Assembly: GCA_001600695.1 (NCBI GenBank)
Contig: BCKQ01000011.1
Coordinates: 431,092 to 491,720 of the forward strand
Direction of reading: 5' to 3'
DNA: 60,629 bases
From: Ascoidea asiatica JCM 7603
Taxonomy: Eukaryota; Fungi; Ascomycota
The translations under genes and the position numbers were made by a program. Shown in pieces: positions 4,336 through 57,562 of the stretch (position 1 is the first letter of the stretch; the number at the start of each line of letters is the position of its first letter). The notes under the pieces were generated by a model. That model was not told where the DNA came from, ran no database searches, and saw only the letters and a list, made by a program, of their open reading frames with translations.

Positions 4336-7300
4336 TCAATATTTAATAATATTAATAATAATGATATTCAAAATGGTAATGATACTTTAATTAATGAAGA
4401 TAGATTATCACTTATTTTTAATTCCGATTCTCAACCTTCTTTAAAACAATTAACTAATGAATTACAAAGATTATCTAAAATTGCAGGTTTAACTGCAACT
4501 GATGCTGCAACTTTAGCAAGAACTCTATCAACTTCAACAATTGGTTATAATAATAATAGCAATAATAATAATAATAATAATAATCAATCTCAAGAAGTGG
4601 ATTCAAATTTAAATAATATTAATAATAATAATAATAATTATAATAATATTAATATTAATAATAATAACAATAATTCAAATATATCTTCAAATTTATCAAA
4701 TGATATAGTTGAAATTAATGATTATAATAATCCAAGTAATTCAACTTCAAATTCAAATTCTTCTTCAAATCATTCTTCAAATGAATCTTCAAGTCAAACA
4801 ACTCCTGAATTACAATCTTCAAAAACTTTTCAATCAAATAATTCATCAAATAATAGAAATAATCTGCTTTCTCATAGTGCAACTCATGCTGCTAAATTAA
4901 TTAATAGAAGAAGTCAATCTTTAAGTTCTCTTGAAAAAAATAATTTTTCTCATTATAATAACAATAATAATAACAATAATAACAATAATCAACAATCTCA
5001 ATATTCAAATCAAGATGATATAATTGAAGAAAATTTAGATGATCCTGTTGTACTTCCTGGGAATGAATCAACTTTAAAAAGAAGTAAATGGACAACTTAT
5101 AGAAAAAATAATAAATCTCCTTCAAGACCAAAAAGAGCAAGTACTGATTTTATTTTAAGTAATGATTTAAATGAAAAATTAAAAAAAGAAAGAGCAAATC
5201 AAGAATTAAAAAGACATCCATTACCTCAACATAGTCAAAATTTAATTCAAAAACATAATCGTCAACCTGGTGATTCAAATTCTTCACAATCTCAAATTCA
5301 AAATTCACCAACATCTATTGATTCAAATAATAAAAATAGAATTCCTTCTGGTCGTACTTCATTAGATGGTCAAACTCAATATATTCAGCAACAAAGAAAT
5401 CAACAACAACAGCAACAACAATCACAACAGTCACAACAACAGCTAAATCATCAAGGCTCAAATAATCAAAATCCTCTTCAACAAGGTTCTCGTAATCATC
5501 AGCGTCATCATTATCGTCATCATGATCAAATGAATCAACCTGTTTCAAGTAATAAAGTAACTCAACAACAAATTCCTATTCAATCTAATCCAAAACTGCC
5601 TCCTCAACAATATAATCAATCAATGAATAAACCTTTACCTCAAATGCAAGAAATTCATCAACAGGTTCAAGAATCTCCAAAAAGAAGATATTATAAATCA
5701 CCACCTTCTCAAGATAGTGCAAGATTTCAATCCATTCAACAACAATTATCTAATTCTAGTTCAAATGATCGTACTTCCCCTCAAAATCAAAATATTACTC
5801 CACAAAAATTACCTTTAAATAGTTATAAAAAGATATTACCTGAAATAAAAGAACAAAAATCTCATACAACATCTAATAATATATCATCATCCTCAAATTC
5901 TTATAAGTCTAATCAAACTACCCCACAATTACAACCACAGGCTGAAATTATTTCAGATAATCAAAACTATAGAAATCAAAATCAGGAAAGACAACAGTAC
6001 TCTGATAGACATTATGATAATTATAGAAATAATCAAAATAATCAAAATTCAGATCATCAGTCCACTCCTCAAATTCAGAAATCACAACCTTCTTTGATGG
6101 CTTCTCCTAAAATTGAACGAGATGCATATCAACATTCTTCTCAAAAGCAACAGCAACAACAATCGAATGTTTCAACACAGAAAAAAACTAATATAGAAAA
6201 CAGACAACCTGATAATTCTGAACTATTTGCTCCAAACAAGGCGAAAATAAAGAAAAGAAAAAATAGTTTAAGTTCATGGCTTAAGGGTAAGACTGAACAG
6301 CAATCTGAAAATATTTCTGAACCTGAAAGCATAATTAGCAGTGAAAGTGGTAGTAGTGCTTCTAACAGTGTTGAACTGAATGGGGATTATGATTCCAACG
6401 AATTACAAGGAAACGCTTCAACAGATAGCTCAAGTCAACCTCTTGATGAAAAAGAAAATAAAAATATATTCAATCATCTTTTCTCGAAAAAGAAATCTTC
6501 TAAAATTCTGAGCTCTCTGTATAAATCCAGTAGTTCTAAAGATAATTATAAATCTTCTTCGAATCAGGAAACTCTTTCTTTTCAAAACTCTAGTAGCTAT
6601 TCATCTACTTCTCCAATTGAGCAAAGAAATCAAACTAACGTTTCTACAAAGGTGTTTAATCAAAAGCAAGAAGAATACAATGCTCAACAAGAAAGACATA
6701 ATGATTATCAACAACAACAGGAAAATCAGCAGCAACAACAACAACAAAAATTTGAGAGCAATAGAAATAATGAAATTAAACAAAACAATGAAATCAAGCA
6801 ATATAATGATGTTCAACCCAACAATGATATCAAACAAAATAATTCTCAAACCTCTTATGATGAAGATACCAGTTACGATCAGTTTGTAAGTAGTAGTTCT
6901 GATGGTGAAAATGGAAAGAAGAAGGAAGTGATAGCTCCTACAAATGGAGGATTGGGAGAAGCTGTACAATTAAAAAGGAAAACAAGTCTTGGTAAAATTG
7001 CTAAGAAACAATCAAAATCAAAGAGAAAAGAGAAAAAAATGAAAGAAACTGAACTTCTTCGAAAGAAAGTTGAAAAAGAAAAACAAATTGCAGAAAATAT
7101 TAATGAAAAGAGTGTAATGGAGGAATCACCAACCAAAACTGATACAACAGATGGTACAGCTCAATTAACTCCAAAATCTGAAGGATTTAAAAGATATAAT
7201 TTGGCAGAATTTGAAACGGATAAAAATGCTAAACCTAATCAAACAGTTTTCAAAACGGATTCTGCTTTTGGATTTCCATTACCACCATTAACTCATTCTA

Positions 7301-10319: not shown

Positions 10320-12106
10320 TTATCTTGTACTATCTTTTTTAACTAAATTTTTTAATTTTAAATTTTCAATTTTAAACTCATATAATTTATTTTTAACTGA
10401 GTTTTTCATTTTTTCTTTTTCAAGTTTATGAGAAATTTCTATAAATTTTATTCTATCTTTAAATGTATCAACAACTTGATTTATTTCTTTAATTGTTAAA
10501 TTATAATTATTTTTTAACTCTTGATAATTTTTTTTTAAATTTTCATAATTATCTCTTAAAATTTCATTATCCTTCTTAAAATTATTTATCTCAATTAAAA
10601 GTTCTTCACGACTTTTACTTTCTCCATTATTATTATTTATTCCATTTGAATATTTTGAAAATTTAGAAAATTTTGGAACTAATTCCATTTCTCCATTCAA
10701 ATCTTCTTTTAAATTCGCTTTTAATAATGAATCCATATATTTTAATGAATTTTTTAATCTACCTTCAATATCTGTTTCTTTTTTATCAACAATATAATCA
10801 TCACTATCTAAAAAATTTCTTTCAATTAATGAATAAATAGTATCATGCTCTCTTAAATTATGAATTTTATGTTCTTTAACTATTTCTTTTATTTTATCAT
10901 TTCTTTTTCTTTTATCATCTTCTTTAATTCTATCATTTCTTTTACTCTTTTCTCTTAAATCTTCAATATCCTTTCGTATATTGTTATTATTTTCTTTATT
11001 TCTATCTTTATATTCTTTTTCAAATGAATTTTTATCTTTAATTTTCTCTTTAATTTTCTCTTTGATATTCTTATTCCTACTTTCTTCAAAATTAATTTCT
11101 TTTTCATTACTTTTGCTTATTTTCCTTTCTTTTTTATTGCTTCTATTATATTTCTCATTTTTCTCATTCTTATTATTCATTTTATCTGTACCTTGTTGTC
11201 CAAATGTTGCTTCAATAAATGAATCACTTAGATCTAATCCATCCATTGAATAATCACTACTATTAAAATTATAAATTTCTGATGTTGGCTTTCTAGGTTT
11301 CTTTACTTTCGTGACTGTATTATCTTTGTCATTTTTACTATTTTTATCACTTTTATCACTATTGTTATCTTTACTGACTTCAATTTCATTATTGTCTCTT
11401 GGCTTATTACTATACCCGTAATCATTATAATAATCATCATTGTAATGATTATCATCAAATAAATCATTCTCATATTTTTTTTGTTCTTTTAAAAATTTTT
11501 CTTTTTTAATATCTCGATTTTTTGATTTTAATTCTTTCAAATCTACAGTTTTATTTTTTTTATTTTTTTTACTTCTTTTTAATTTCTTAGAATATTGATC
11601 ATTTTCATTATCACTATTATCGTTATCATCATCATTAATATCGCCAATATTATCAGCAGTATCATCATCAAGATTATCACCATTATTATCCTCATTAGAA
11701 TCATCGTCATTAATGCCATGCACTAATTTTCCTTTATGTTTAGCTTGCTTAAAATTTTCTGAAATATTTGAATGCTTTCTCTTAACCTTCCTTTCTTTAA
11801 CTTTCTCTGATATTGGAAGAATTGGATTTCCTTCAGAATCAAGTTTAAATTTAGATATATTTTTTAAAAATTTATCAGTAACTTTATTTACAAGTTTTTC
11901 AGTTCTTAATTCATTTTCTTTACTTAAAATATTATCAGATCTTTCATTAAACAAAAAATCAATATCGGAATTATTATTAATATAACCCTTATCTTCATCT
12001 TCATTTGACTGTTCTTCATCAAGATTTTCATTAACTTCCTCAAGATTCTTTCTATCAGTTCTTTTACTACCTGAATAACTCTCATTTTCTCTAGAATTTT
12101 GATCAC

Positions 12107-12174
<68 letters not shown>

Positions 12175-14435
12175 TTATTATTATTGTTATTATTGTTATT
12201 ATTATCTTTATCTTTATCATTATCATTATCATTATCATTATCATTATCATTCTTAGTATCAATTATTTTAATATCAATTATTTTAATATCATCGGAGAGA
12301 AGATCATTCAAATCTAAATTTGTTTTGCTTTTTTCTTTAACTTCTGGAATATTTTGATCTTCGATAATTAGCCTATTTCCATTATCTTCCACAATACCGG
12401 TTTGGGCAGTATCTTTTATAACATCAAAATTAGAAGTTGTATATTCATTATGATCGTTAGCTTCTCCATCTGATTCAATATATGTTGTTTCCTCATTTCC
12501 ATATTTATTTAGTTTTTTAGAAGATCTCGTCACTCTTGTTGATGTCAAAGGTTTAGAATATGATTTTCTAGGTGTTCTAGTTATTCTATTCAGTTTCCTA
12601 TTTGAAACCAAAACTAACTCGGTAGAAGTTTCAGTATAATCATTTTTCCAACATTCAATATCTTGAGTAAAATTATCATAATCATCTAAATCAAATTCAG
12701 ATAAATCTTCAACAATAGCTAGGATATAATCTTCAAGATCATAAACATCAACTTGATATAGATCATGACCTGTAGGAAATTTATCGATAATCTTAGTATC
12801 CAATATTCTCTTAGGCTTCTTTTTATCATTATTTTCATGTTGATATAATAAATCAAAATTATAATCTCTAAGAATAAAAAGAGGATTAATTCCATTAAAT
12901 ACAGTTACTGTCTCATCATGTGGATCAGGAAATGAAGATTTTTTTTCAATATTCGTTTTTAAAATTTCTTTATTATCAATAGAATTTGTTTCATCAATTT
13001 CTGATTTCAACTTGCTTGTATTTAGTTTTTTAGTTGAATCACTTGGATCATTGATTTTTAAAAAAGATTCAACTAAAATATTGTGAGATAATTTTTGAGA
13101 ATTCAATAATTCCAAATAATGATTTAAAGAATTTAAATTAAATATTGAAGAATCAGAAAAATTGAATAAAGAATCTGCATTCTCATAATTTACCTCACTT
13201 GAGTTAATTTTATAATGTAACCATTTTAATAAATCTATTAATCTTTTATCCTTTTTAGGTGATACTAAATTTTCATTTAATTTTATACTTGAAATTGCAG
13301 ATGGTTTTGAAAGTTTAGGAATTTTCAGAAATTTTGATTCTAATAATGGGAAATTAATATTATTTATATATAATTGAATTAAAGCTAAAACAAATTTATT
13401 TGAATCAGTTGGTTTATCCATTTTTTTTGGGCATAATTTCATATATGAAATTTTTAATTCACTTGGATCAGTAATACTCGAAGGATCATTTTTATTTAAA
13501 AATAATTTTCTATAAGTTGGATGAAATATAATATATAAAACATTATAACTTGAAATATAATCATATTGATCTCTAATTAAATCCTTATAAGATACTGAGA
13601 ATCTTACCAGCTTATCATCAAAATTCTCTTTATTATTTTTTAAATCATATTTTTCAATTGGATCTGTAATAAAAAATAAAGGTTTCAAATGAGATATATG
13701 ATCTAAAATTTTATACAAATGATTTGGATCCAATATTGAATATTTATCATAAAATAGTAAAGTTACTATAGATAAGAATTTAAAAGATGAATTGAAGATT
13801 GTACTTTTTTTCAAAGATGAATCTGTAGGAATTGAATCATTACTTGGATTTAAATTGAAAAGTTTAACATCAGATATATTTAATATTTGCTGTACAATTT
13901 CATTCTTATCAGAATAAACATGATAATTAAGTTTTATGTATAATCTAACTTGATTCAAAATATTAAATTCATTATTTCTTATCAGTCTCATGAAATGCAT
14001 TGATGATAGATCAGTGAAATTTAAAATGAAAATCAATTTAAATCTTGCACTAATAATTAATATATTCCAAACATGATTCATTTTGAAAAAAAAAATCATA
14101 TCAGAATCCAATAGAGCATCTGACTGAGAAAGTTTAAAATCGTGATGATTCTTGAAATTATGAATTTTAGTGTATAAAGAGGGAATTGTAGTATCCTTTG
14201 ACAATATCACGAATGAATCATATTCATTCCAAATATCAGGATATTTTTCTATATCTACTCTTAAAAGCAATAAAGAAATGTATATTTGTAAAAACTCACC
14301 AGATTGGAGATGATCTGTCTCTTCTATTTCTGTTTCTCCTTCAGACTCTGAGGTGTCTGATTCTTCTGTTTCTGTTTCTGCTTCAGACTTTGAGATGTCT
14401 GATTTATCCTGATCAACCCCCATTTTTACCAACAT
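10320..14435 (-). CDS. Orphan 1371-aa protein (paralog A); N-terminal domain shared with neighbouring ORF, acidic/basic low-complexity middle, C-terminal coiled coil
   Basis: 4.1 kb uninterrupted ORF with ATG at 14433-14435. Similarity blocks to the 14990-20053 protein are visible by eye. Confidence 0.85.
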
Positions 14436-14989
14436 TTTCCTTAATTCTTTTGATATTCCTTCTGAATCTGATGAATTGAGAGTGAATGAATGAAAAAATT
14501 GAAAAACCTGCTACTTCAATTTCATTTCCTTGAAGCTCATCAATAAATACCAAAATATCAACAACACCATAAGCTCCAAAACACCAAAAGGTTAAAAATA
14601 TTTTAAAAAAAAACACAAACACGCGAAACCTGCACATCTCGGTCGGTAACTGCCTAAACACGCGCTGGTACTTTCCTGGGCCATTTTTTTTATTTTGGCT
14701 GATAAAATATATTTTAGCATGGCGACAGTTTTTAGTAATATTCAATTGTAAATAGAGTGGTGGAAAATGGGAAAAAATAAAGAAGTAAGTATATTTTAAA
14801 AGTTGCAATTTTAGGAATCATATTCAGAATAAAAGTTCATATCAGATATATTCGTCTATAATAGAATAGGTTAATTCTAGCCAAAGATTATAAATATATA
14901 ACAATATCTAGGCTTTATTATCTAGAATTGAACTTAGCCCAAGTTTATTAATTTATTTTATGGTGACCTAGTATTACTTTGAGCAGATT
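14436..14989. promoter_or_regulatory. Bidirectional promoter of the orphan paralog pair with SCB/MCB-like elements
   Basis: 554 bp between divergent ATGs. GC core at ~14615-14685 has ACGCGAAA (14621-14628) and a second ACGCG (~14660). Confidence 0.55.
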
Positions 14990-17900
14990 ATGGAATCTCA
15001 TCTCCCTCAAATAACTATCAATAATGAAAGAATGATCAATTCAAGTAATGCAGAAAAAAAGAACAATCAAAGAGTAAATATTGGGGAAAATGGACAAAAT
15101 TCAAAAAAAAATAAAGGCAGTGATAGCCCAAAAAATGATACCAATAACAATGAAACCAAAAATCATTTGCTTGTAAGTGATTATTTGAAGCAATACATCA
15201 CCATTTTGGTAACTTATTATCAAAAGATTAATGATTTCAAAGGATTATTTATTTTATCCAGTGATTCTTTAGTTATTCCTCCAAATTATCAAATTTTTTC
15301 ATCTGATTTTAATAAACCAAAAAATAGATTCGGTGATTCAATAATTTTACTTTATTTGAATAATGTTTGGAATATAATATTAGTTTCTCCATCTGATAAT
15401 ATATTTTATATTTTTAATTTTACAAATTTAGATGTGGTTAATTTTTATAAAATTTTAAAATCTAGGTTATTAACTTTTTCAAAAGATATAAAAAATATAA
15501 TCAGTGAATTTTATTCATTTGATTTATCTAAAAGATTAATAAATTCTAAAATTTTAAAATTTTATAACTTTGATACTTTTAAAAGTATTTCAAGTTTCAA
15601 TTCTCTATTAAATTCTAATTATGGTAAATTGAATGACTATTTTATCAAAACTTTAATACTTATAATAAAAGAAACTAGATCAATCAAAAAGACTTTAGAT
15701 TTCAAATCAAATATTTTAAAAGCTTTGAATTATAAAATGGCTTTTAATGATTATTTTCTTCATTCAACTATAAGTGAAGATTTTACAAAAAGTTTTTTAA
15801 ACATTGTTCCTAATTCTCCTCCTCGTCTTTCCAAGATATCCTCAAAATCCACTTTTCAAACAAATACTATATCAAAGAATCAAGAGTCTACAGGTAATCA
15901 GACTGATAATCAAAATTCAAATCAAAATACAAATCAAAATCAAAATCAAAATACAATTTCAAATAATGATCAAAATAATCAGATAAATCAAAATAATACA
16001 GAGCGTTTAGTTCAAAATGTAACTCAGAATGATAATGAAAATCATAATTCAAATATAAATGACATTATTGATCTAACCCAGAATCCCGACAATAATTTAA
16101 ATACTGTTTCCAATGTTATAAATAATACACCTCTTACTCCAACCAAGGATCTCAACTTCAATATGATAAAAAACCCTCTTGGTACTGTAAAAAAAAAAAT
16201 TGTTCCCATAAATCCAAATATACATAGTCTCGATGGAATACCTGAGGAATTAATATTTGATATTTCAGAAATTACCTCTTTAGAATCGATGAAAGAAAAA
16301 TATAATCAATTTTATTCAACCAAGGAAATTTTATTCTTCAAATTTAATCCAGATTATAATGCTTCAATATCTCAATCTTTATTTCCAAGTAAAATTGTAT
16401 CAAAATTATTACTTAAAGATCACGCTTCAATATCTTCATCTAACAATGGTCTTGAAAAATATTGTACTGGAAATCCTGAAGTTAAGAATATTTTAAGATT
16501 AATGTCATTCAAGCTTTTCTTAAAAAATTTAGATTCACAATTAATTCATAATATTGAAAAATCATTAAAATTCAAATTACATAAATTCGATTTTATTTTT
16601 TCAAGTAATCCTAGTGCAGATAAAAACTCGTTATTAAACAATATAATAAGTAATATTCTTGAACAAAATCTTGATATTGATATAACTTCAATTTCCTTAA
16701 ATATAAAGCTTTTGCAAAATGAATTTCAAAAACTAGGTTTTAAATTTGATTTGTCGAAAGTAAATTTTAATGGATTTATCCAATTTTTCATTAGCTTAAA
16801 TAAAAGTTTAAGTAATTTTTTACCAAACAATCCTAAAAAAGATCAGCCCATAATTCATATAAATGGAGTTAATCCATTTCTTAATTTATCTACAAAACCA
16901 TATGAATTTATTATTTTAATAAGCAAGCATGGAAATTTATCTCTTGCAATATCTAATAATAATGATACTCTTAAAAGCCCGGTATTGAAAAACTTAACAC
17001 TGGATAGTACTCCAACACCTCAAAGAAATATTGGACATATATTGTCGCCTACTGTGAGAAATACTAACCCAACTAATGAAAACCTTCAAAAGGGAAATAT
17101 TGAAATACAAAATGATAACTTGGGTGATATACTGTATGACTCTTTGATTGATTCAAATGAATTAATTAATGATAATATTTCAGACTTATCTATTATTCCA
17201 AAGGGAACGAAAGAAAAAAATTTGGCAAAAGAAGAAAAAAAAAGAGTTGATAATGAGAAAATTTTAATGAAAAATAGTGAAATTTCGAACTCATCTAATA
17301 TTAGCAATGAGCCAGTAATACATATAAATAATGAAACAATCAATAGTATTAACAATAAGGATAATGTTAATAATATTGCTGCTACTTTAAATCGCATTCA
17401 AACTCAACAAATACCAAATTTTTTTCCTCAGAGTTATAATCAAAAAGCATTTTCGCCTCCAAATCTAAGTACAAGTACAAGTATAAGTACAAGTTCGACC
17501 ATAAATTTGAATGCTAAAGCTAATACCAATATGAATTTTAATCGGACCAATACGAATATAAACCCTAATACTGTTAATTCAAATATAAATGCCAATGCTA
17601 ATGCTCCTATTAATACTAATAGGAATACTAATTCAAATAATAATTCAAGTGGTAATTTAAATAACCATTCAAGTAAAAATTCAAACTCAAATCAATTTCA
17701 AAACCAAAATCAATTTGAATTGCCTCGATATAACCAAAATCAGAATTTAAATCCTAATCAGCAATATGGCCAAATAAAAAATCCAGTGAGAATTGATTCT
17801 AACAGTCCTATTCTAAAAGGTTTCAATGAAGCAGTGAATCAATACTCTTCGCCTTTGACAATAAGAACGGTCAGTGTGTTAGGTTCTGTAATTAATGACA

Positions 17901-20053
17901 AGCAATTAGCAAATATTTTTCAAAAATCTAAAAGTTATTTGAACTCTTTGTCAAACTTTTTAAATCACTTATTTCAATATTTACTTGAATCTAAAAGGAT
18001 AATTGATGAACATTCAGTACAATATCCTAATAATAAAAGCTCAAGTTTCAATGTTATTATTAAGAAATATCTAAATTTAAATTATATATATAAATATTTT
18101 AAACATATTTTCACCTCCTTAAATGAAGTTATCTTAATTATTAGAAGTAATAGACCATTTTCTGAAATTACAATTACTCAAAAAAATTGTATAAATCTTT
18201 TAGCCATTAAAAAACTTTATCAATTCAAACCACCTATAGGTGATATATATAATAATTTTCAAATTGTTTTGAAACAGGATGTTAATAATCCTTCGGAATA
18301 CTTTGTGGATATAGAAGATTGTTCAAATATATTTCCCAAAATTAATTCTATATATTTACCAAAAACTTTAAATGGGAACTCCAATTCTATTGGTAATTTC
18401 CCTAATTCACTTATATCACCTGAACCAAATAATCATAGATCTTTTAGTGTAATTGGAAGAAATACCAATGATTCAAGTGATAGTCGAAACTTTAGTGGTA
18501 AAATAATGGATAATTTATTAACCCAAAATTTTATTCAAAACTCACCAATTTCAGTATCTGATAGAACACAAAATCAATTTACAAATCAAAGCCAGAATCA
18601 ATCTCCAATTTTAGGTCAGAATAATTTTCAATTTCGGCTTCCAAACTCAATATTTCAAGATGGTCAAAAAAATCAGCTAAATAATCAGCAACAGAATCAT
18701 CAACAGAATCATCAATTGAGCAGTCAGATGAATAATCAACAAATGGACCAGCAGATCAATCAACAAATCAATCAACTGAATAATTTAGTGTCTAATCAAG
18801 AGAGTATAAAAAATCGAAACATGATTGTAAATCAAATTCCTAATCAAATTCCTAATCAAACTTTTACTCAGGTTGTGAATCATATTTTCAACCAACCACC
18901 TAATCAAGTACAAAATCAACAACCAAATCAACCACCTCATCTAATTTCTCGTCAAGTCCCTAATCAACTATCTAGTAACAATCGTCAGCAAGATCTTAAT
19001 CAAGTTCCCAACCGAGTTCCTAATCAAATTCTGAATCGACTTTCAACTCAAATACCTAATCCGATTCCAAGTCAAATACCTTCTCAATTATCTACTCAAA
19101 TTCCTAGGCATATACCTAATCTGGCAACTAATCTGATATCAAATCAAGTTCCAAATCAAAATTTTTCTCGTATTCCAAATCGACTATCGAGCGAAGTATC
19201 AAGCCAAATACAGAATCGAGTATTAAATAAAGCACCTAGTAAAGTACCTAATCAAATATATAATCCACCATTCAATCAAACACTCAATCAGGCACCTAAT
19301 CAATTCTCAACACCAATTAAATTTCATAATCAAATTTCAAATCAACCTGATAATAAACAAATTAATAAAAATAATGATGTTAAAGTTTTAAGAATATTTA
19401 CAATTATTGAAAAACTTATAAATAATGAAAAACTTAAAGAAAATTTTGATATATTAAAATCATTTTCAATATATTTAAAAGAAATTTTAAAGGAATATAG
19501 AATAAATTTAAATGAAAAATTTAAAAATAATCAAATTTATTTATATAAAAATGATAAATTAAATAAAGAAATTTATTTTATTTATAATTTCAAAAAAAAT
19601 TTAATTGAAATATTTAGTATTGAATTAATTAAACCAATTTTAGAAACTGAGAAAAATAAAAATAAAAATAAAAATAAAAAAATTGAAGAAAACAAAGGAG
19701 AAGAATCAAATGAACAGTCATTTAAGAAAAAATTATCAAAAGAGTTATATGAGGAATTGAAAGAATTGAATTTAATTAAGAAAAAAATTGAAGAAAATAA
19801 ATCAAATTTAATTAAAATTACAGAGGAATTTGAAAAAAGTAAAAAAGTTAATGAGAGTTTTATTGAAGAAGAAAGAAAACTTATTATAAATTTTGAAAAA
19901 GAATTTAATGAAATTAATAATAAATTAAATGAAGATAAACAAAAGATTGAAGAAGAAATTATGAAAGTTAAAAGAAATTTTAATGAAGAAAAGGTAAAAG
20001 TAATAAATGAAATTAAATTAATTGATAATAAATTAAGTTTAGTTAATAAATGA
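14990..20053 (+). CDS. Orphan 1687-aa protein (paralog B); shared N-terminal domain, N/Q-rich NQ[IV]P repeats, C-terminal coiled coil
   Basis: 5 kb uninterrupted ORF. VWNI..S...F..NFT.L block and NG[IV]NP motif are shared with paralog A. Confidence 0.85.
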   Translation: MESHLPQITINNERMINSSNAEKKNNQRVNIGENGQNSKKNKGSDSPKNDTNNNETKNHLLVSDYLKQYITILVTYYQKINDFKGLFILSSDSLVIPPNYQIFSSDFNKPKNRFGDSIILLYLNNVWNIILVSPSDNIFYIFNFTNLDVVNFYKILKSRLLTFSKDIKNIISEFYSFDLSKRLINSKILKFYNFDTFKSISSFNSLLNSNYGKLNDYFIKTLILIIKETRSIKKTLDFKSNILKALNYKMAFNDYFLHSTISEDFTKSFLNIVPNSPPRLSKISSKSTFQTNTISKNQESTGNQTDNQNSNQNTNQNQNQNTISNNDQNNQINQNNTERLVQNVTQNDNENHNSNINDIIDLTQNPDNNLNTVSNVINNTPLTPTKDLNFNMIKNPLGTVKKKIVPINPNIHSLDGIPEELIFDISEITSLESMKEKYNQFYSTKEILFFKFNPDYNASISQSLFPSKIVSKLLLKDHASISSSNNGLEKYCTGNPEVKNILRLMSFKLFLKNLDSQLIHNIEKSLKFKLHKFDFIFSSNPSADKNSLLNNIISNILEQNLDIDITSISLNIKLLQNEFQKLGFKFDLSKVNFNGFIQFFISLNKSLSNFLPNNPKKDQPIIHINGVNPFLNLSTKPYEFIILISKHGNLSLAISNNNDTLKSPVLKNLTLDSTPTPQRNIGHILSPTVRNTNPTNENLQKGNIEIQNDNLGDILYDSLIDSNELINDNISDLSIIPKGTKEKNLAKEEKKRVDNEKILMKNSEISNSSNISNEPVIHINNETINSINNKDNVNNIAATLNRIQTQQIPNFFPQSYNQKAFSPPNLSTSTSISTSSTINLNAKANTNMNFNRTNTNINPNTVNSNINANANAPINTNRNTNSNNNSSGNLNNHSSKNSNSNQFQNQNQFELPRYNQNQNLNPNQQYGQIKNPVRIDSNSPILKGFNEAVNQYSSPLTIRTVSVLGSVINDKQLANIFQKSKSYLNSLSNFLNHLFQYLLESKRIIDEHSVQYPNNKSSSFNVIIKKYLNLNYIYKYFKHIFTSLNEVILIIRSNRPFSEITITQKNCINLLAIKKLYQFKPPIGDIYNNFQIVLKQDVNNPSEYFVDIEDCSNIFPKINSIYLPKTLNGNSNSIGNFPNSLISPEPNNHRSFSVIGRNTNDSSDSRNFSGKIMDNLLTQNFIQNSPISVSDRTQNQFTNQSQNQSPILGQNNFQFRLPNSIFQDGQKNQLNNQQQNHQQNHQLSSQMNNQQMDQQINQQINQLNNLVSNQESIKNRNMIVNQIPNQIPNQTFTQVVNHIFNQPPNQVQNQQPNQPPHLISRQVPNQLSSNNRQQDLNQVPNRVPNQILNRLSTQIPNPIPSQIPSQLSTQIPRHIPNLATNLISNQVPNQNFSRIPNRLSSEVSSQIQNRVLNKAPSKVPNQIYNPPFNQTLNQAPNQFSTPIKFHNQISNQPDNKQINKNNDVKVLRIFTIIEKLINNEKLKENFDILKSFSIYLKEILKEYRINLNEKFKNNQIYLYKNDKLNKEIYFIYNFKKNLIEIFSIELIKPILETEKNKNKNKNKKIEENKGEESNEQSFKKKLSKELYEELKELNLIKKKIEENKSNLIKITEEFEKSKKVNESFIEEERKLIINFEKEFNEINNKLNEDKQKIEEEIMKVKRNFNEEKVKVINEIKLIDNKLSLVNK

Positions 20054-20294: not shown

Positions 20295-21050
20295 TTATTT
20301 TTTTTGACCTTGAGCGGCAACAGCAGCTGCACCAGCAGCAGCAGCTTCAGGATCTAAATAATAAGGAGCTTTAACAGGTTTTAAATTATCATCTAATTCA
20401 AAAACTAAAGGAATACCAGTTGGAATATTAATTTCAGCAATTTCTTCAGCAGTTACACCAGTTAAATATTTATATAAACCTCTTAAAGAATTACCATGAG
20501 CAACAACTAAAACAGTTTTATTTAATAATAATTCTTTTGAAATTTCATCTTGCCAATATGGTAACATTCTTTCAATAACTAATTTTAAAGATTCAGTTTT
20601 TGGTATAACATTTGGATCAATATTATTATATCTTGGATCATTAAATTGACTAAATTCATTTGAATTTGAAATTGGTGGTGGTGGTACATCATAACTTCTT
20701 CTATAAGTTTTAAATAAAGTTGGACCAAATTTTTCTAAAGCTTCAGATTTATCTTTACCTTGTAAATCACCATAATGTCTTTCATTTAATCTCCAAGATC
20801 TTTTAACATCAATAAATAATCTATCAGAAGATTCTAAAGCTAAATTTGCAGTTTGAATAGCTCTTGATAATTTTGAAGTGAATAAAATTTCTGGTTTTAA
20901 ACCTGAATTTTTTAAAAGTATACCAGCATTAATTGCTTCATTTTTACCTTTTTCAGATAATTTAACATCAACCCAACCTGTGAATAAATTTTTTGAATTC
21001 CATTCACTTTGACCATGACGAATTAAAATTAATTTTTTAGTTTCAGACAT
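20295..21050 (-). CDS. GPM1: 2,3-BPG-dependent phosphoglycerate mutase
   Basis: LILIRHGQSEWN..NLFTGWVDV, WRLNERHYGDLQGKDK, VAHGNSLRG, NIPTGIPLVFELD, C-terminal AAAAGAAAVAAQG. Confidence 0.98.
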   Translation of the reverse strand: MSETKKLILIRHGQSEWNSKNLFTGWVDVKLSEKGKNEAINAGILLKNSGLKPEILFTSKLSRAIQTANLALESSDRLFIDVKRSWRLNERHYGDLQGKDKSEALEKFGPTLFKTYRRSYDVPPPPISNSNEFSQFNDPRYNNIDPNVIPKTESLKLVIERMLPYWQDEISKELLLNKTVLVVAHGNSLRGLYKYLTGVTAEEIAEINIPTGIPLVFELDDNLKPVKAPYYLDPEAAAAGAAAVAAQGQKK

Positions 21051-45817: not shown

Positions 45818-48460
45818 ATGAGTGATTCGGGCTTCACCCTTCCAAAAAACAATAGTAGAAAATTGAGTGATCTGGGGAATAAGTATTCGAATCCTCTTTC
45901 AAGTTCAGAAAATTCAATACCTTCATCATCGCAATCATCATTTTTAAATGAAATGAAAGATACTTTAGATTATGAAGAAGAAATTGAAACTATTTCTAGT
46001 GATAATGCTAATGATTTTCAAGCATATGAGGATCAATCAAAAGAAGATTATTCAATAATAAGTGATTCTGAGAATGAAACTTTGACAAATAGTAGTGGAA
46101 GTTCAGATGATTTTGAACCATTGGGAGTCATTGATAGAAGTAAGAAAAAATTTATTACACCAATTAAAAATCCTGCAATTATAACTGAATCTGGTGAAAC
46201 TTTGAAACCAATATTAAAAAATTACAAAATTAATAATGTTTATGAAAGTTTTGAAAAATTTAAAAGTATTGGTAAAAGAATTTCAAGAAAACGAAGAAAA
46301 AGATCTTCAAGTTCAATTGATTATTCCAAAGACGATTCAAATAAAAAAATAAAAGGCTCTTCGGCCATTAAATTAAATCAAAGATTAAAAAATTTCAAGA
46401 ATTTAAATGAGGAGAATTTCAATTATTTAAATAATTTTAGTTTAAATGATGAAAGTTTTGATTATGAAAATGATAATGAAATTAATGATGAAATCAATGG
46501 TGAAATTAACGATGAAATTAACAATGAAATCAATGCTGAAAATGAAATTACTACTGGAAACAAAGTCATAAATGAAAATGAAATGAATAATGATAATTAT
46601 AATCATAAAGAAAATGAAAATGAAGTTAATAATGAGATGAAAAAGAAAAATGAAAATGAAAATGATACAGTAACTGAGTCTGAGACTGATAATGAAACTG
46701 GTAATAAAATCGAAACTGGGATGAAAATCGATAATGTAAATCTCGCACTTCCTTTAATATCGGAAAATAATATCAAAAATATTGAAAATGAAAAAAATAT
46801 ACTGAATAAAAACAATTCAAGTATTAATAATAAAATTTTAAAAAAAAAAAATAATATAGAACGAAGACTTTCTTTACATTATAAATCATTTTTTGACTCA
46901 TCTCTTGGGGTTCTTCAATCATCTGCAGCAACATTTATTCCAATAAATTTTTCAAAAAAAAACTATGAAGGTTTTAATTATTTTTCAAAAAATTATTCTT
47001 TGAATGATAACAATAATAAAAAAGATAATTTATCATTGATTTCAAGCATTTATTTATCAATTTTAAATCCCAAATTCATTGAAGAATCACGTTTATTAAA
47101 AAATTCATTAAAATTTAAATTTGAATTATTTAATAATGAAAATAATTGGATTTTTAATCAATTTGGTTTTACAAAAAATTATTATGATAAAAACAAAAAT
47201 TTTGTAAATTTTATAAATATTTCAACTTTAAGAGGTTTTATAGTTGATGATTATAAAAATATATATAAAAATTATAAAAATGAAATTGAAATTTTAAATC
47301 TTGAACAAAATGATTTAAAAATTAAAAATCTAAATTCAAATTCAAATTACAAATTAATCAATTTTTTAAATATTGTTGATTTAAATAAAATTTTGAAATT
47401 AAAAATTCAAGATTGTATAAAAATTTTTGAAAATTATTTAAATTTATCAATTAATATAAAATTATTAAATCAATTTATTGTATTTTATGTTCATCCAGTT
47501 AATTTTAGAATTGATAATAATGTTTATTATGATAATTCAGAAAATTTATATTATTTTAAAATTATTCAATATATTAAACTAGAACCAATTGGTAATGAAA
47601 TAATTTTAGAATCTTGTTTACAACCATTAATTGTTGAATTACTTTTATATGTTAGATTACCAGGTATAATAAAAAATGATAATAACAATTATAATTTTAA
47701 TTTTCAAAATGTTTATCATAAGTTAAATAGTTATAAATTAATTGATACTGATAAAGATTTTGGTGAGGCATATTTAGTAAATGGAAATTTTAATAAAGAA
47801 TTAGATTTGATGATTATAACTATTAAACAATCATTTATTTTTGATAAAGAATTTAAATTACAAATTTATAAAAATGAATTTAATGAAAATGATTTTGGGT
47901 TATTAATGCAGTTACCAAAAAGATATTTATTTGATAAAAAATCACGAGTTAAATTAGGATTAAATGAAGATAATACAATTTTTGAAAAAAGATATTTTTA
48001 TAGAGAAGATTTAAATATTAGTAATTCAAATGAAGAAATTGAAGAAGATGAAATGAAAAGTGAGAATAAGAGTGAAGAAATTTTCAAAATACCAAAAAAT
48101 TCTGAAATCTTTGAAATTATTAATAAAGATAATCGTTTTAATGATATGATAATTCTCCGAAATAGGAAAAAAGTTAAATTTGATCTTAGTAAAGAAAATA
48201 ATAAAATTAATAACAATCATGAAAATAATATGGAAGAATTTCATGAAAAGTGTGAAAATGAATTAGCAAATGAAATAAGTAATCCAATAAGTGATTCAGC
48301 AGATAATTTAAGTGATTCAATGAATGATTCAATAAATGATTCAATAGAAGATTTAATAGAAGATAATAAGGATGAAGAATATAATAATAAAGAATATTCT
48401 AATGAAGAATCGATAATAAATGATTTAGAATTATTAGATGAAATTGAGAATCTTTTTTAA
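45818..48460 (+). CDS. Orphan 880-aa protein; acidic termini, central globular region, KPILK and KKVKF motifs
   Basis: 2.6 kb ORF with ATG in A-rich context; no family recognised. Confidence 0.8.
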   Translation: MSDSGFTLPKNNSRKLSDLGNKYSNPLSSSENSIPSSSQSSFLNEMKDTLDYEEEIETISSDNANDFQAYEDQSKEDYSIISDSENETLTNSSGSSDDFEPLGVIDRSKKKFITPIKNPAIITESGETLKPILKNYKINNVYESFEKFKSIGKRISRKRRKRSSSSIDYSKDDSNKKIKGSSAIKLNQRLKNFKNLNEENFNYLNNFSLNDESFDYENDNEINDEINGEINDEINNEINAENEITTGNKVINENEMNNDNYNHKENENEVNNEMKKKNENENDTVTESETDNETGNKIETGMKIDNVNLALPLISENNIKNIENEKNILNKNNSSINNKILKKKNNIERRLSLHYKSFFDSSLGVLQSSAATFIPINFSKKNYEGFNYFSKNYSLNDNNNKKDNLSLISSIYLSILNPKFIEESRLLKNSLKFKFELFNNENNWIFNQFGFTKNYYDKNKNFVNFINISTLRGFIVDDYKNIYKNYKNEIEILNLEQNDLKIKNLNSNSNYKLINFLNIVDLNKILKLKIQDCIKIFENYLNLSINIKLLNQFIVFYVHPVNFRIDNNVYYDNSENLYYFKIIQYIKLEPIGNEIILESCLQPLIVELLLYVRLPGIIKNDNNNYNFNFQNVYHKLNSYKLIDTDKDFGEAYLVNGNFNKELDLMIITIKQSFIFDKEFKLQIYKNEFNENDFGLLMQLPKRYLFDKKSRVKLGLNEDNTIFEKRYFYREDLNISNSNEEIEEDEMKSENKSEEIFKIPKNSEIFEIINKDNRFNDMIILRNRKKVKFDLSKENNKINNNHENNMEEFHEKCENELANEISNPISDSADNLSDSMNDSINDSIEDLIEDNKDEEYNNKEYSNEESIINDLELLDEIENLF

Positions 48461-55990: not shown

Positions 55991-57562
55991 ATGGAATCAA
56001 AAATCATATCCACCAATGATTCTACAAATAATGCTTTAATTTCAAAGAACAATAGTAATAATGATAGTAATAATATTTCTATTGAATATCCTGATGAACT
56101 TCATTTAGAACATGTAGAAATTACTGAAATAAGTGATACTTCAAATTCTAATTCAAATGATAAAATAAAAATTAATAATTCAAATATTCAAAATAACATT
56201 TCAGACTTAGATAATATTATTGATAATAATATTCAGAATAATGAAGCTGTTGATAATATCCAAGGCATAAATAATAATAATAATATTAATAATAACGAAG
56301 ATGATAATGATGACAAAAATGACAATAACAATGTGAATGATAATGATAATGAAACCGACAACCTAAATGACAATAATGAAGAAAATGATAATGAAAATAA
56401 TAATAATAATAATGATATTAATAGCTATAATGAAAATTATGATGAAATCTACGATCAAGATTATGATCAAAATTATAACTATTATGATAATAATAATGAA
56501 AATAATAATAATGAATATTTAGATAATAATTTCATAAAAATTCAAATATTTGGAACTGTTTTTGAAACATCAAAAAGATATAAAGATTTAAATCCTGTTG
56601 GAATGGGAGCTTTTGGTTTAGTTTGTTCTGCAATTGATTTAAAATTTGATTCAAAAGTTGCAATAAAAAAAATTTTAAAACCATTATCAACTGAAGTTTT
56701 AGCAAAAAGAACTTATAGAGAATTAAAATTATTAAAAAATTTAAGACATGAAAATCTTATAAGTTTAACAGATATTTTTTTATCACCATCAAATGATATT
56801 TATTTTGTAACTGAATTACAAGGTGCAGATTTATTAAAATTATTAAATACAAGACCTTTAGAACCTCAATTTATACAATATTTTATTTATCAAATTTTAA
56901 GAGGTTTAAAATATATTCATTCATCTGGTGTTATACATAGAGATTTAAAACCTTCAAATATTTTAATTAATGAAAATTGTGATTTAAAAATTTGTGATTT
57001 TGGTTTAGCTAGAATTCAAGATCCTCAAATGACAGGATATGTTTCAACAAGATATTATAGAGCTCCAGAAATTATGTTAACATGGCAAAAATATGATACC
57101 GAAGTTGATATTTGGTCAACAGCATGTATATTTGCAGAAATGATTGAAAATAAACCTTTATTTCCAGGTAAAAATCATGTACATCAATTTTCAATAATAA
57201 CAGAATTATTAGGATCTCCACCACAAGATGTTATAAATACAATATGTTCAGAAAATACATTAAAATTTGTACAATCTTTACCACATAAAGAACCAATTAA
57301 TTTATTTGAAAGATTTAAAGATAAATTAGATCCATTAGGTATTGATTTATTATCAAAAATGTTAGTATTTGATCCAAAAAAAAGAATTAATGCTACACAA
57401 GGTTTATCACATCAATATTTATCAGCATATCATGATCCTGATGATGAACCTGAAGCTGAAGAACAATTTGATTGGCAATTTAATGATGCAGATTTACCAA
57501 TGGAAACTTGGAGAAAAATGATGTATTCAGAAATTAATGATTTTCATAATCGTTTTGAATAA
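55991..57562 (+). CDS. HOG1: p38/Hog1-type stress MAP kinase with N-terminal Asn/Asp-rich extension
   Basis: [59 protein letters not shown] (TGY activation motif), YHDPDDEP. Confidence 0.96.

Follow-up and report, generated by a model that had tools for sequence, protein, structure and literature searches.

What are the two giant, head-to-head genes that lie beside GPM1 in the yeast Ascoidea asiatica? The window analysed here is a 60,629-nucleotide stretch of A. asiatica JCM 7603 (contig BCKQ01000011.1, positions 431,092 to 491,720), and the two intronless open reading frames (ORFs) in question, which we call A and B, encode proteins of 1371 and 1687 amino acids (aa) and diverge from start codons 554 bp apart. 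We reproduced all of the ORF coordinates, the lengths and the gap between the start codons from a preliminary description of the locus, which proposed that A and B are cryptic paralogs. We found by alignment and synteny that A and B are Ascoidea-restricted paralogs, produced by an inverted duplication that predates the split of A. asiatica and A. rubescens. Moreover, the first domain that they share probably has the fold of Ulp1/SENP-type proteases (C48, clan CE). By the membership rules of that family A and B are not C48 proteases, and what we propose is a domain "derived from, and shaped like" them.

The preliminary description saw three collinear blocks shared by A and B, and these fared unequally. 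Block 1 is genuine: A41-153 and B58-157 are 27% identical, with a composition-adjusted blastp E value of 4e-8 to 1e-7, and their local alignment score of 134 was reached by none of 1000 shuffles (mean 57 +/- 10). Blocks 2 and 3 were at chance level in the plain pairwise comparison of A260-620 with B400-680, where 269 of 1000 shuffles scored as high; the long alignments with low E values that appear without composition correction reflect an Asn/Lys bias common to A and B. Shuffled controls, the check proposed at the outset, were thus beaten for block 1 and not for blocks 2 and 3, nor for the C-terminal coiled coils. When the A. rubescens orthologs described below were included, the A-family and B-family profiles matched in hhalign with 98% probability (E 1.5e-13, 177 columns). 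The block 3 region also became significant (E 0.004, 0 of 100 block shuffles) in a test in which an insertion in A, aa 466-505, was taken out by hand. This second match is carried by the motif NG[IV]xP, the sole motif of its kind in each of the four proteins. Block 2 and an intervening helix are collinear in the four-way alignment, and block 2 has no score of its own. Since block 3 is significant and block 2 collinear, the duplicated unit is, on these alignments, a two-domain N-terminal module of ~500 aa. The idea that domain 2 repeats domain 1 internally, or is itself another C48 domain, was rejected.

Beyond this module A and B differ. Their middles are of opposite character, as first described, and this is kept in A. 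rubescens: the D/E/K/R fraction is 0.41/0.35 in the A pair versus 0.17/0.15 in the B pair. A heptad scan bore out a C-terminal coiled coil in both proteins, and homology between the two coils was undetected (77 of 1000 shuffles scored as high; hhalign probability 0.2%). Searching the genome with a four-sequence profile returned A and B as the sole matches, with no third paralog. A and B therefore share a significant common domain and have no closer copy elsewhere in the genome.

How old is the pair? The best matches of the window's GPM1 are two A. rubescens proteins (84% and 82%), and walking from GPM1 located both orthologs on A. rubescens scaffold KV454484.1 (locus L017), as intact, head-to-head ORFs 284 bp apart and beside GPM1:

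L017:14940-18173, plus strand: ortholog of A, 1077 aa (31% over 458 aa, E 1e-47)
L017:10813-14655, minus strand: ortholog of B, 1280 aa (45% over 197 aa, E 5e-42; 38% over 280 aa, E 7e-34)

The order and orientation of A, B and GPM1 are identical in the two species, in line with the suggestion that an old duplication was kept intact, while the next genes outwards, past GPM1 and past A, are different ones; the conserved block is A-B-GPM1 only. Identity between orthologous domains is 27-47% and z scores run from 6 to 30, the exception being the coil of B (z 2.6), and the low-complexity parts have drifted. This pattern of conserved domains amid drifted low-complexity sequence is that of real genes, and comparison of the orthologs shows A and B to be under protein-level constraint. 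In window coordinates, the parts of the system and its synteny anchor are:

10320-14435, minus strand: gene A, 1371 aa, intronless
13686-14315, minus strand: A domain 1 (aa ~41-250), common to both paralogs, probable dead Ulp1/C48 fold
12816-13628, minus strand: A domain 2 (aa ~270-540), with blocks 2 and 3, NGINP at 514 and a CDK-consensus site, S392, that is kept in the A. rubescens ortholog (36% to ortholog, z 17.8)
10620-12815, minus strand: A middle, low-complexity, charged and poorly conserved, with a poly-Asn/Asp tract and several basic clusters resembling nuclear localisation signals
10332-10619, minus strand: A C-terminal coiled coil (aa ~1273-1368; 35% identity to ortholog, z 13.4)
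14436-14989, no strand: divergent intergenic region, 554 bp, with motif cores discussed below
14990-20053, plus strand: gene B, 1687 aa, intronless
15161-15769, plus strand: B domain 1 (aa ~58-260), probable dead Ulp1/C48 fold
16277-16969, plus strand: B domain 2 (aa ~430-660), with blocks 2 and 3 and NGVNP at 625, after an N/Q-rich insertion (43% to ortholog, z 27.7)
17867-18364, plus strand: B domain 3 (aa ~960-1125), conserved, B-specific, of no family (27% to ortholog, z 6.2)
19367-19645, plus strand: B domain 4 (aa ~1460-1552), conserved, B-specific, of no family (30% to ortholog, z 8.0)
19706-20050, plus strand: B C-terminal coiled coil (aa ~1573-1687; 27% to ortholog, z 2.6)
20295-21050, minus strand: GPM1, phosphoglycerate mutase, synteny anchor outside the A/B system

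Domains 3 and 4 of B are embedded in N/Q/P-rich disorder. The B ortholog also ends in a coil of similar length, whose sequence is weakly conserved. Neither A nor B has a long hydrophobic stretch that would suggest a membrane protein. B also carries a tract of NQ[IV]P-type repeats (window 18820-19345, plus strand), in place of which its ortholog has a poly-Asn tract in the late middle.

Searches for other relatives returned nothing. Homolog searches with A35-620 and B50-680 and a phmmer search of 1.84 billion representatives with A domain 1 were empty, largely because the A. rubescens orthologs are annotated as pieces of 777, 437 and 159 aa. A metagenome scan with the four-sequence alignment yielded 0 relatives. 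The NCBI models at L017:10813-18173 (ASCRUDRAFT_106960, ASCRUDRAFT_106978 and the 437-aa model between them), all "uncharacterized", split or shorten the intact ORFs. The pair is also missing at GPM1 in Saccharomycopsis crataegensis, in two Logan contigs and at the second GPM1 copy of A. rubescens. That species has two near-equal GPM1 copies (L016 and L017), and only the L017 copy is syntenic with the window. By the searches made, A and B thus appear to have no relatives beyond the A. rubescens orthologs. The statement that neither gene belongs to a known family holds for Pfam and sequence searches, but it probably does not hold for the origin of the common domain.

What, then, is domain 1? 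Its strand-His-Trp-hairpin-Asp core pattern in block 1 was likened to Ulp1/SENP before any fold search was made. In a subsequent ESM-Atlas feature search with B55-260, Peptidase_C48 clusters came at ranks 2, 3 and 22 (0.90, 0.90 and 0.88); rank 1 was an unnamed viral cluster, and the ten best family-bearing matches were all Peptidase_C48 or its clan. When domain 1 was aligned globally, and without guidance, to the Ulps of the same genome, all five C48 motifs fell in register. The spacing from the Trp to the Asp site is 16 residues in all four proteins, as it is in the genome's Ulp1 and in six Ulp1-type metagenome domains, unlike the 23-26 residues of Ulp2-like enzymes. A two-block C48 matrix from which His and Asp were omitted scored this Trp highest in three of the proteins (A, B and the ortholog of B) and second in the A ortholog, and only 3 of 118 background proteins outscored A or B. 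The secondary structure predicted for domain 1 is helix-strand-strand-strand-strand-helix-helix-strand-helix, an order that fits that of C48. Residues invariant across the four proteins (ILS, D, N, WN, NFTxL, K and N) mark a candidate functional surface of the family.

The catalytic sites themselves are replaced. At the His site, next to an invariant Trp (W123 in A, W127 in B), stands V122 in A and V126 in B (V/V/V/T across the four proteins), and the Asp site is Asn in all four (N139 in A, N143 in B). Neither A nor B has any Cys in aa 1-260, the alignment of the four sequences has no column of invariant Cys or His, and the His-Asp-Cys triad with oxyanion Gln that defines C48 is not present. 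If domain 1 is a C48 domain, it would thus be catalytically dead. Because the replacements are common to both paralogs, the loss probably predates the duplication. Some enzymes first deemed dead do stay active through other residues (PMC10919355), but given the missing Cys and the lack of any invariant Cys or His we regard active proteases with relocated catalytic residues as highly improbable.

A more serious competitor is that domain 1 has an alpha/beta fold with no relation to C48, its likeness being a chance beta-hairpin pattern. A and B would then be lineage-specific scaffold or chromatin proteins that evolve fast and belong to a family either new or diverged beyond recognition. A substantial body of results weighs on that side. 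Comparison of the four-sequence profile with C48 by hhalign gave a probability below 0.2%, no better than block-shuffled controls, and a glocal C48 hidden Markov model (HMM) placed the four proteins at ranks 10-90 of 120; the B ortholog alone beat all shuffles, with one of two models. There was no Pfam or PDB-sequence match for whole proteins or domains, and the PF02902 cut-off was not reached. The two AlphaFold models were poor (predicted local distance difference test scores, pLDDT, of 38 and 47), and they and seven fold searches were uninformative: no structural match emerged and a C48 structure was never listed. The Atlas matches to B were borderline, with 143-144 shared features against 170 typical of true members, and the same search with A domain 1 found no match. 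The motif tests, spacing included, were post hoc, and the motif matrix gave false positives against a background set of ~120 proteins. The best of these, an Ecm25-like protein, was considered as a third family member and rejected for want of any link. Finally, the WLND motif is degenerate: its Trp is Leu in all four proteins, its Asp is in register only in B, and in the A pair an acidic residue stands one position further on. The Asp of WLND (D451 of Ulp1) is required for SUMO binding (PMC3216068), and the degenerate motif suggests that SUMO binding itself may have been lost. Nevertheless, the family predicted in advance headed the family-bearing matches of the Atlas search, and five motifs are collinear at exactly the Ulp1-type spacing. 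We therefore regard the unrelated fold as a distinctly less likely explanation, and retain the C48-derived domain as the probable one.

Among known systems, A and B resemble Ulp1/SENP (PF02902, clan CE) in motif order, in the Trp beside the His site, in the 16-residue spacing, in language-model features and in being large proteins with disordered and coiled-coil regions. They differ in that other residues occupy the His, Asp and Cys sites, the WLND and PIN motifs are degenerate, every Pfam/HMM threshold is missed and a second domain of no known family follows. In addition, their domain is N-terminal, unlike that of the genome's own Ulps, where it lies in the C-terminal part. Sir4/Asf2-type tandem pairs of Saccharomycetaceae are likewise fast-evolving, large and part-disordered, with C-terminal coils and an origin by local duplication; we take this as a lead only, and found no sequence link to A and B. 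Another comparison is with the inactive deubiquitinases (pseudo-DUBs) and papain-like scaffolds, which retain a ubiquitin-like-system protease fold without catalytic residues and presumably act in scaffolding or binding; the consulted portions of two reviews give Sad1/USP39, PAN2, Rad4 and OTULINL as examples (PMC10919355, PMC10318531). Unlike A and B, the scaffolds described there are of the USP, OTU, JAMM or transglutaminase-like type and none is a head-to-head pair, and those portions name no natural inactive C48 member. Likewise, our limited literature search found no natural fungal C48 pseudoenzyme, although ubiquitin-protease ones have been described, and no paper linking Ascoidea with Ulp1.

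What might such proteins do? We lean, by a modest margin of confidence, towards A and B being lineage-specific pseudo-Ulp binding scaffolds rather than enzymes, probably nuclear. The dead C48 fold and domain 2 would together form a protein-binding module, the C-terminal coiled coil would oligomerise, and the disordered middle would bear localisation and phospho-sites. The module may still read SUMO or a SUMO-like domain; its partner may equally be something other than SUMO, because the SUMO-contacting WLND motif is degenerate. There is an engineered precedent for a dead Ulp1 domain as a SUMO reader, the substrate trap Ulp1(3) C580S, whose catalytically dead domain binds SUMO (PMC3216068). However, the trap retains D451 and the remaining SUMO surface, which A and B mostly lack.

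The genome offers a context for such a role. A genome-wide PF02902 search found six loci, A and B not among them: five intact C48 genes and one broken relic. The intact genes are one Ulp1 and four Ulp2-like genes on contigs C11, C13, C14 and C23 (loci L010-L014), and two of the Ulp2-like genes (503 and 1307 aa) stand in tandem on C23. The PF11976 profile gave 16 SUMO/ubiquitin-like matches. Two are ORFs of SUMO size and several are long ORFs with SUMO-like domains, while some of the matches resemble ubiquitin in their size and repeats. Sites among the 16 are C2:1250154, C3:1370518, C2:1262102, C2:1596294, C3:402896 and C4:203620. Given SUMO binding by a dead Ulp1 domain and the expanded set of Ulp and SUMO-like genes in this genome, a SUMO-reader role is attractive, as a weaker inference. 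If the C48 origin is true, A and B would show how a SUMO eraser fold can be recast as a scaffold or reader, in a species that encodes five intact Ulps and additional SUMO-like proteins besides. Whatever the fold of domain 1, the pair constitutes a genus-specific family, not described before, that has four conserved domains and is fragmented in public annotation. These statements extend to two species and to evidence from sequence.

Could the domain have come from a mobile element? Ulp1 domains occur among the products of Ginger1 and Mutator elements (PMC2836005), and domestication of a transposon-borne Ulp1 of this kind, rather than descent from host ULP1 or ULP2, would fit the broken Ulp1-like relic on contig C37, which has a fragment of a Pif1-like helicase nearby. 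Of 17 C48 domains compared with the A/B profile that relic ranked highest, and it aligned in catalytic register, but its score is near chance (matched or exceeded by 42 of 1000 shuffles and by 21 of 727 background windows), and A and B are both single-copy and have neither a transposase domain nor a repeat copy. We consider this origin unlikely. The relic has a stop after the Cys motif and ambiguous codons, and together with the Pif1-like fragment (L015:1537-2184 and 6758-7048 for the two) it looks like a decayed Helitron-type element.

Do A and B work together? The preliminary description called them a candidate two-component system. In the sense of a His-Asp phosphorelay this fails, as neither protein has a kinase or receiver domain or any Pfam family at E 0.1. 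In the sense of an obligate, co-transcribed heterodimer, joined through the C-terminal coils or paired N-terminal modules, it is an additional claim compatible with the scaffold reading. The head-to-head order has been kept in two distant species despite changed flanking genes, the common interval is short (554 and 284 bp), both proteins keep terminal coils and the genome has no third paralog. However, adjacency is the default outcome of local duplication, and divergent pairs are common here, making up 28% of neighbouring pairs (25 of 88 intergenic intervals), among which the 554-bp interval is the fourth shortest. The coils are non-homologous, and the idea that they are charge-complementary was rejected: both are neutral to basic. 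Direct binding of A to B is accordingly doubtful, and the obligate heterodimer tentative to the same degree.

Co-promotion is a plausible conjecture. The shared interval has cores like those of the MluI and Swi4/6 cell-cycle boxes (MCB/SCB): ACGCG at 14621 and 14660 and CGCGAAA at 14622. It holds two of the window's four ACGCG sites and is one of 6 among the 88 intervals with at least two such cores. These promoter motifs are not conserved, and we gave G1/S co-regulation little weight because the cores are missing from the 284-bp A. rubescens interval.

Most speculative is a natural heterodimeric pseudo-Ulp complex that would read or shield SUMO conjugates, possibly those of an additional SUMO peculiar to the lineage, and would thereby give the expanded SUMO system of Ascoidea a layer of readers; from sequence we hold this to be a long shot. 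A pair of related pseudoproteases is reported to act as a heterodimer in Clostridioides difficile, CspC:CspA, but these have a subtilisin fold and belong to bacterial spores, and the likeness to A and B is an analogy only (PMC12880746).

The surroundings of the pair are unremarkable. The window is budding-yeast DNA, intron-poor and with a GC content of ~23%, and the neighbours of A and B are ordinary yeast genes (ABD1, ZDS, LOG1, GPM1, PHO84 and STB3). Positions 12264-17900 are matched with 0 differences by a contig of a DNA run, which is possibly the source sample. The two genes contain 4 and 6 CTG codons, one of them within domain 1, and the ambiguity of CUG decoding leaves the result unaffected. 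Elsewhere in the window, a further orphan ORF of 880 aa without a Pfam match lies between ELP1 and ADI1 (45818-48460, plus strand), and a HOG1-like MAP kinase ORF (55991-57562, plus strand) carries an Asn/Asp-rich N-terminal extension of ~180 aa before the kinase domain.

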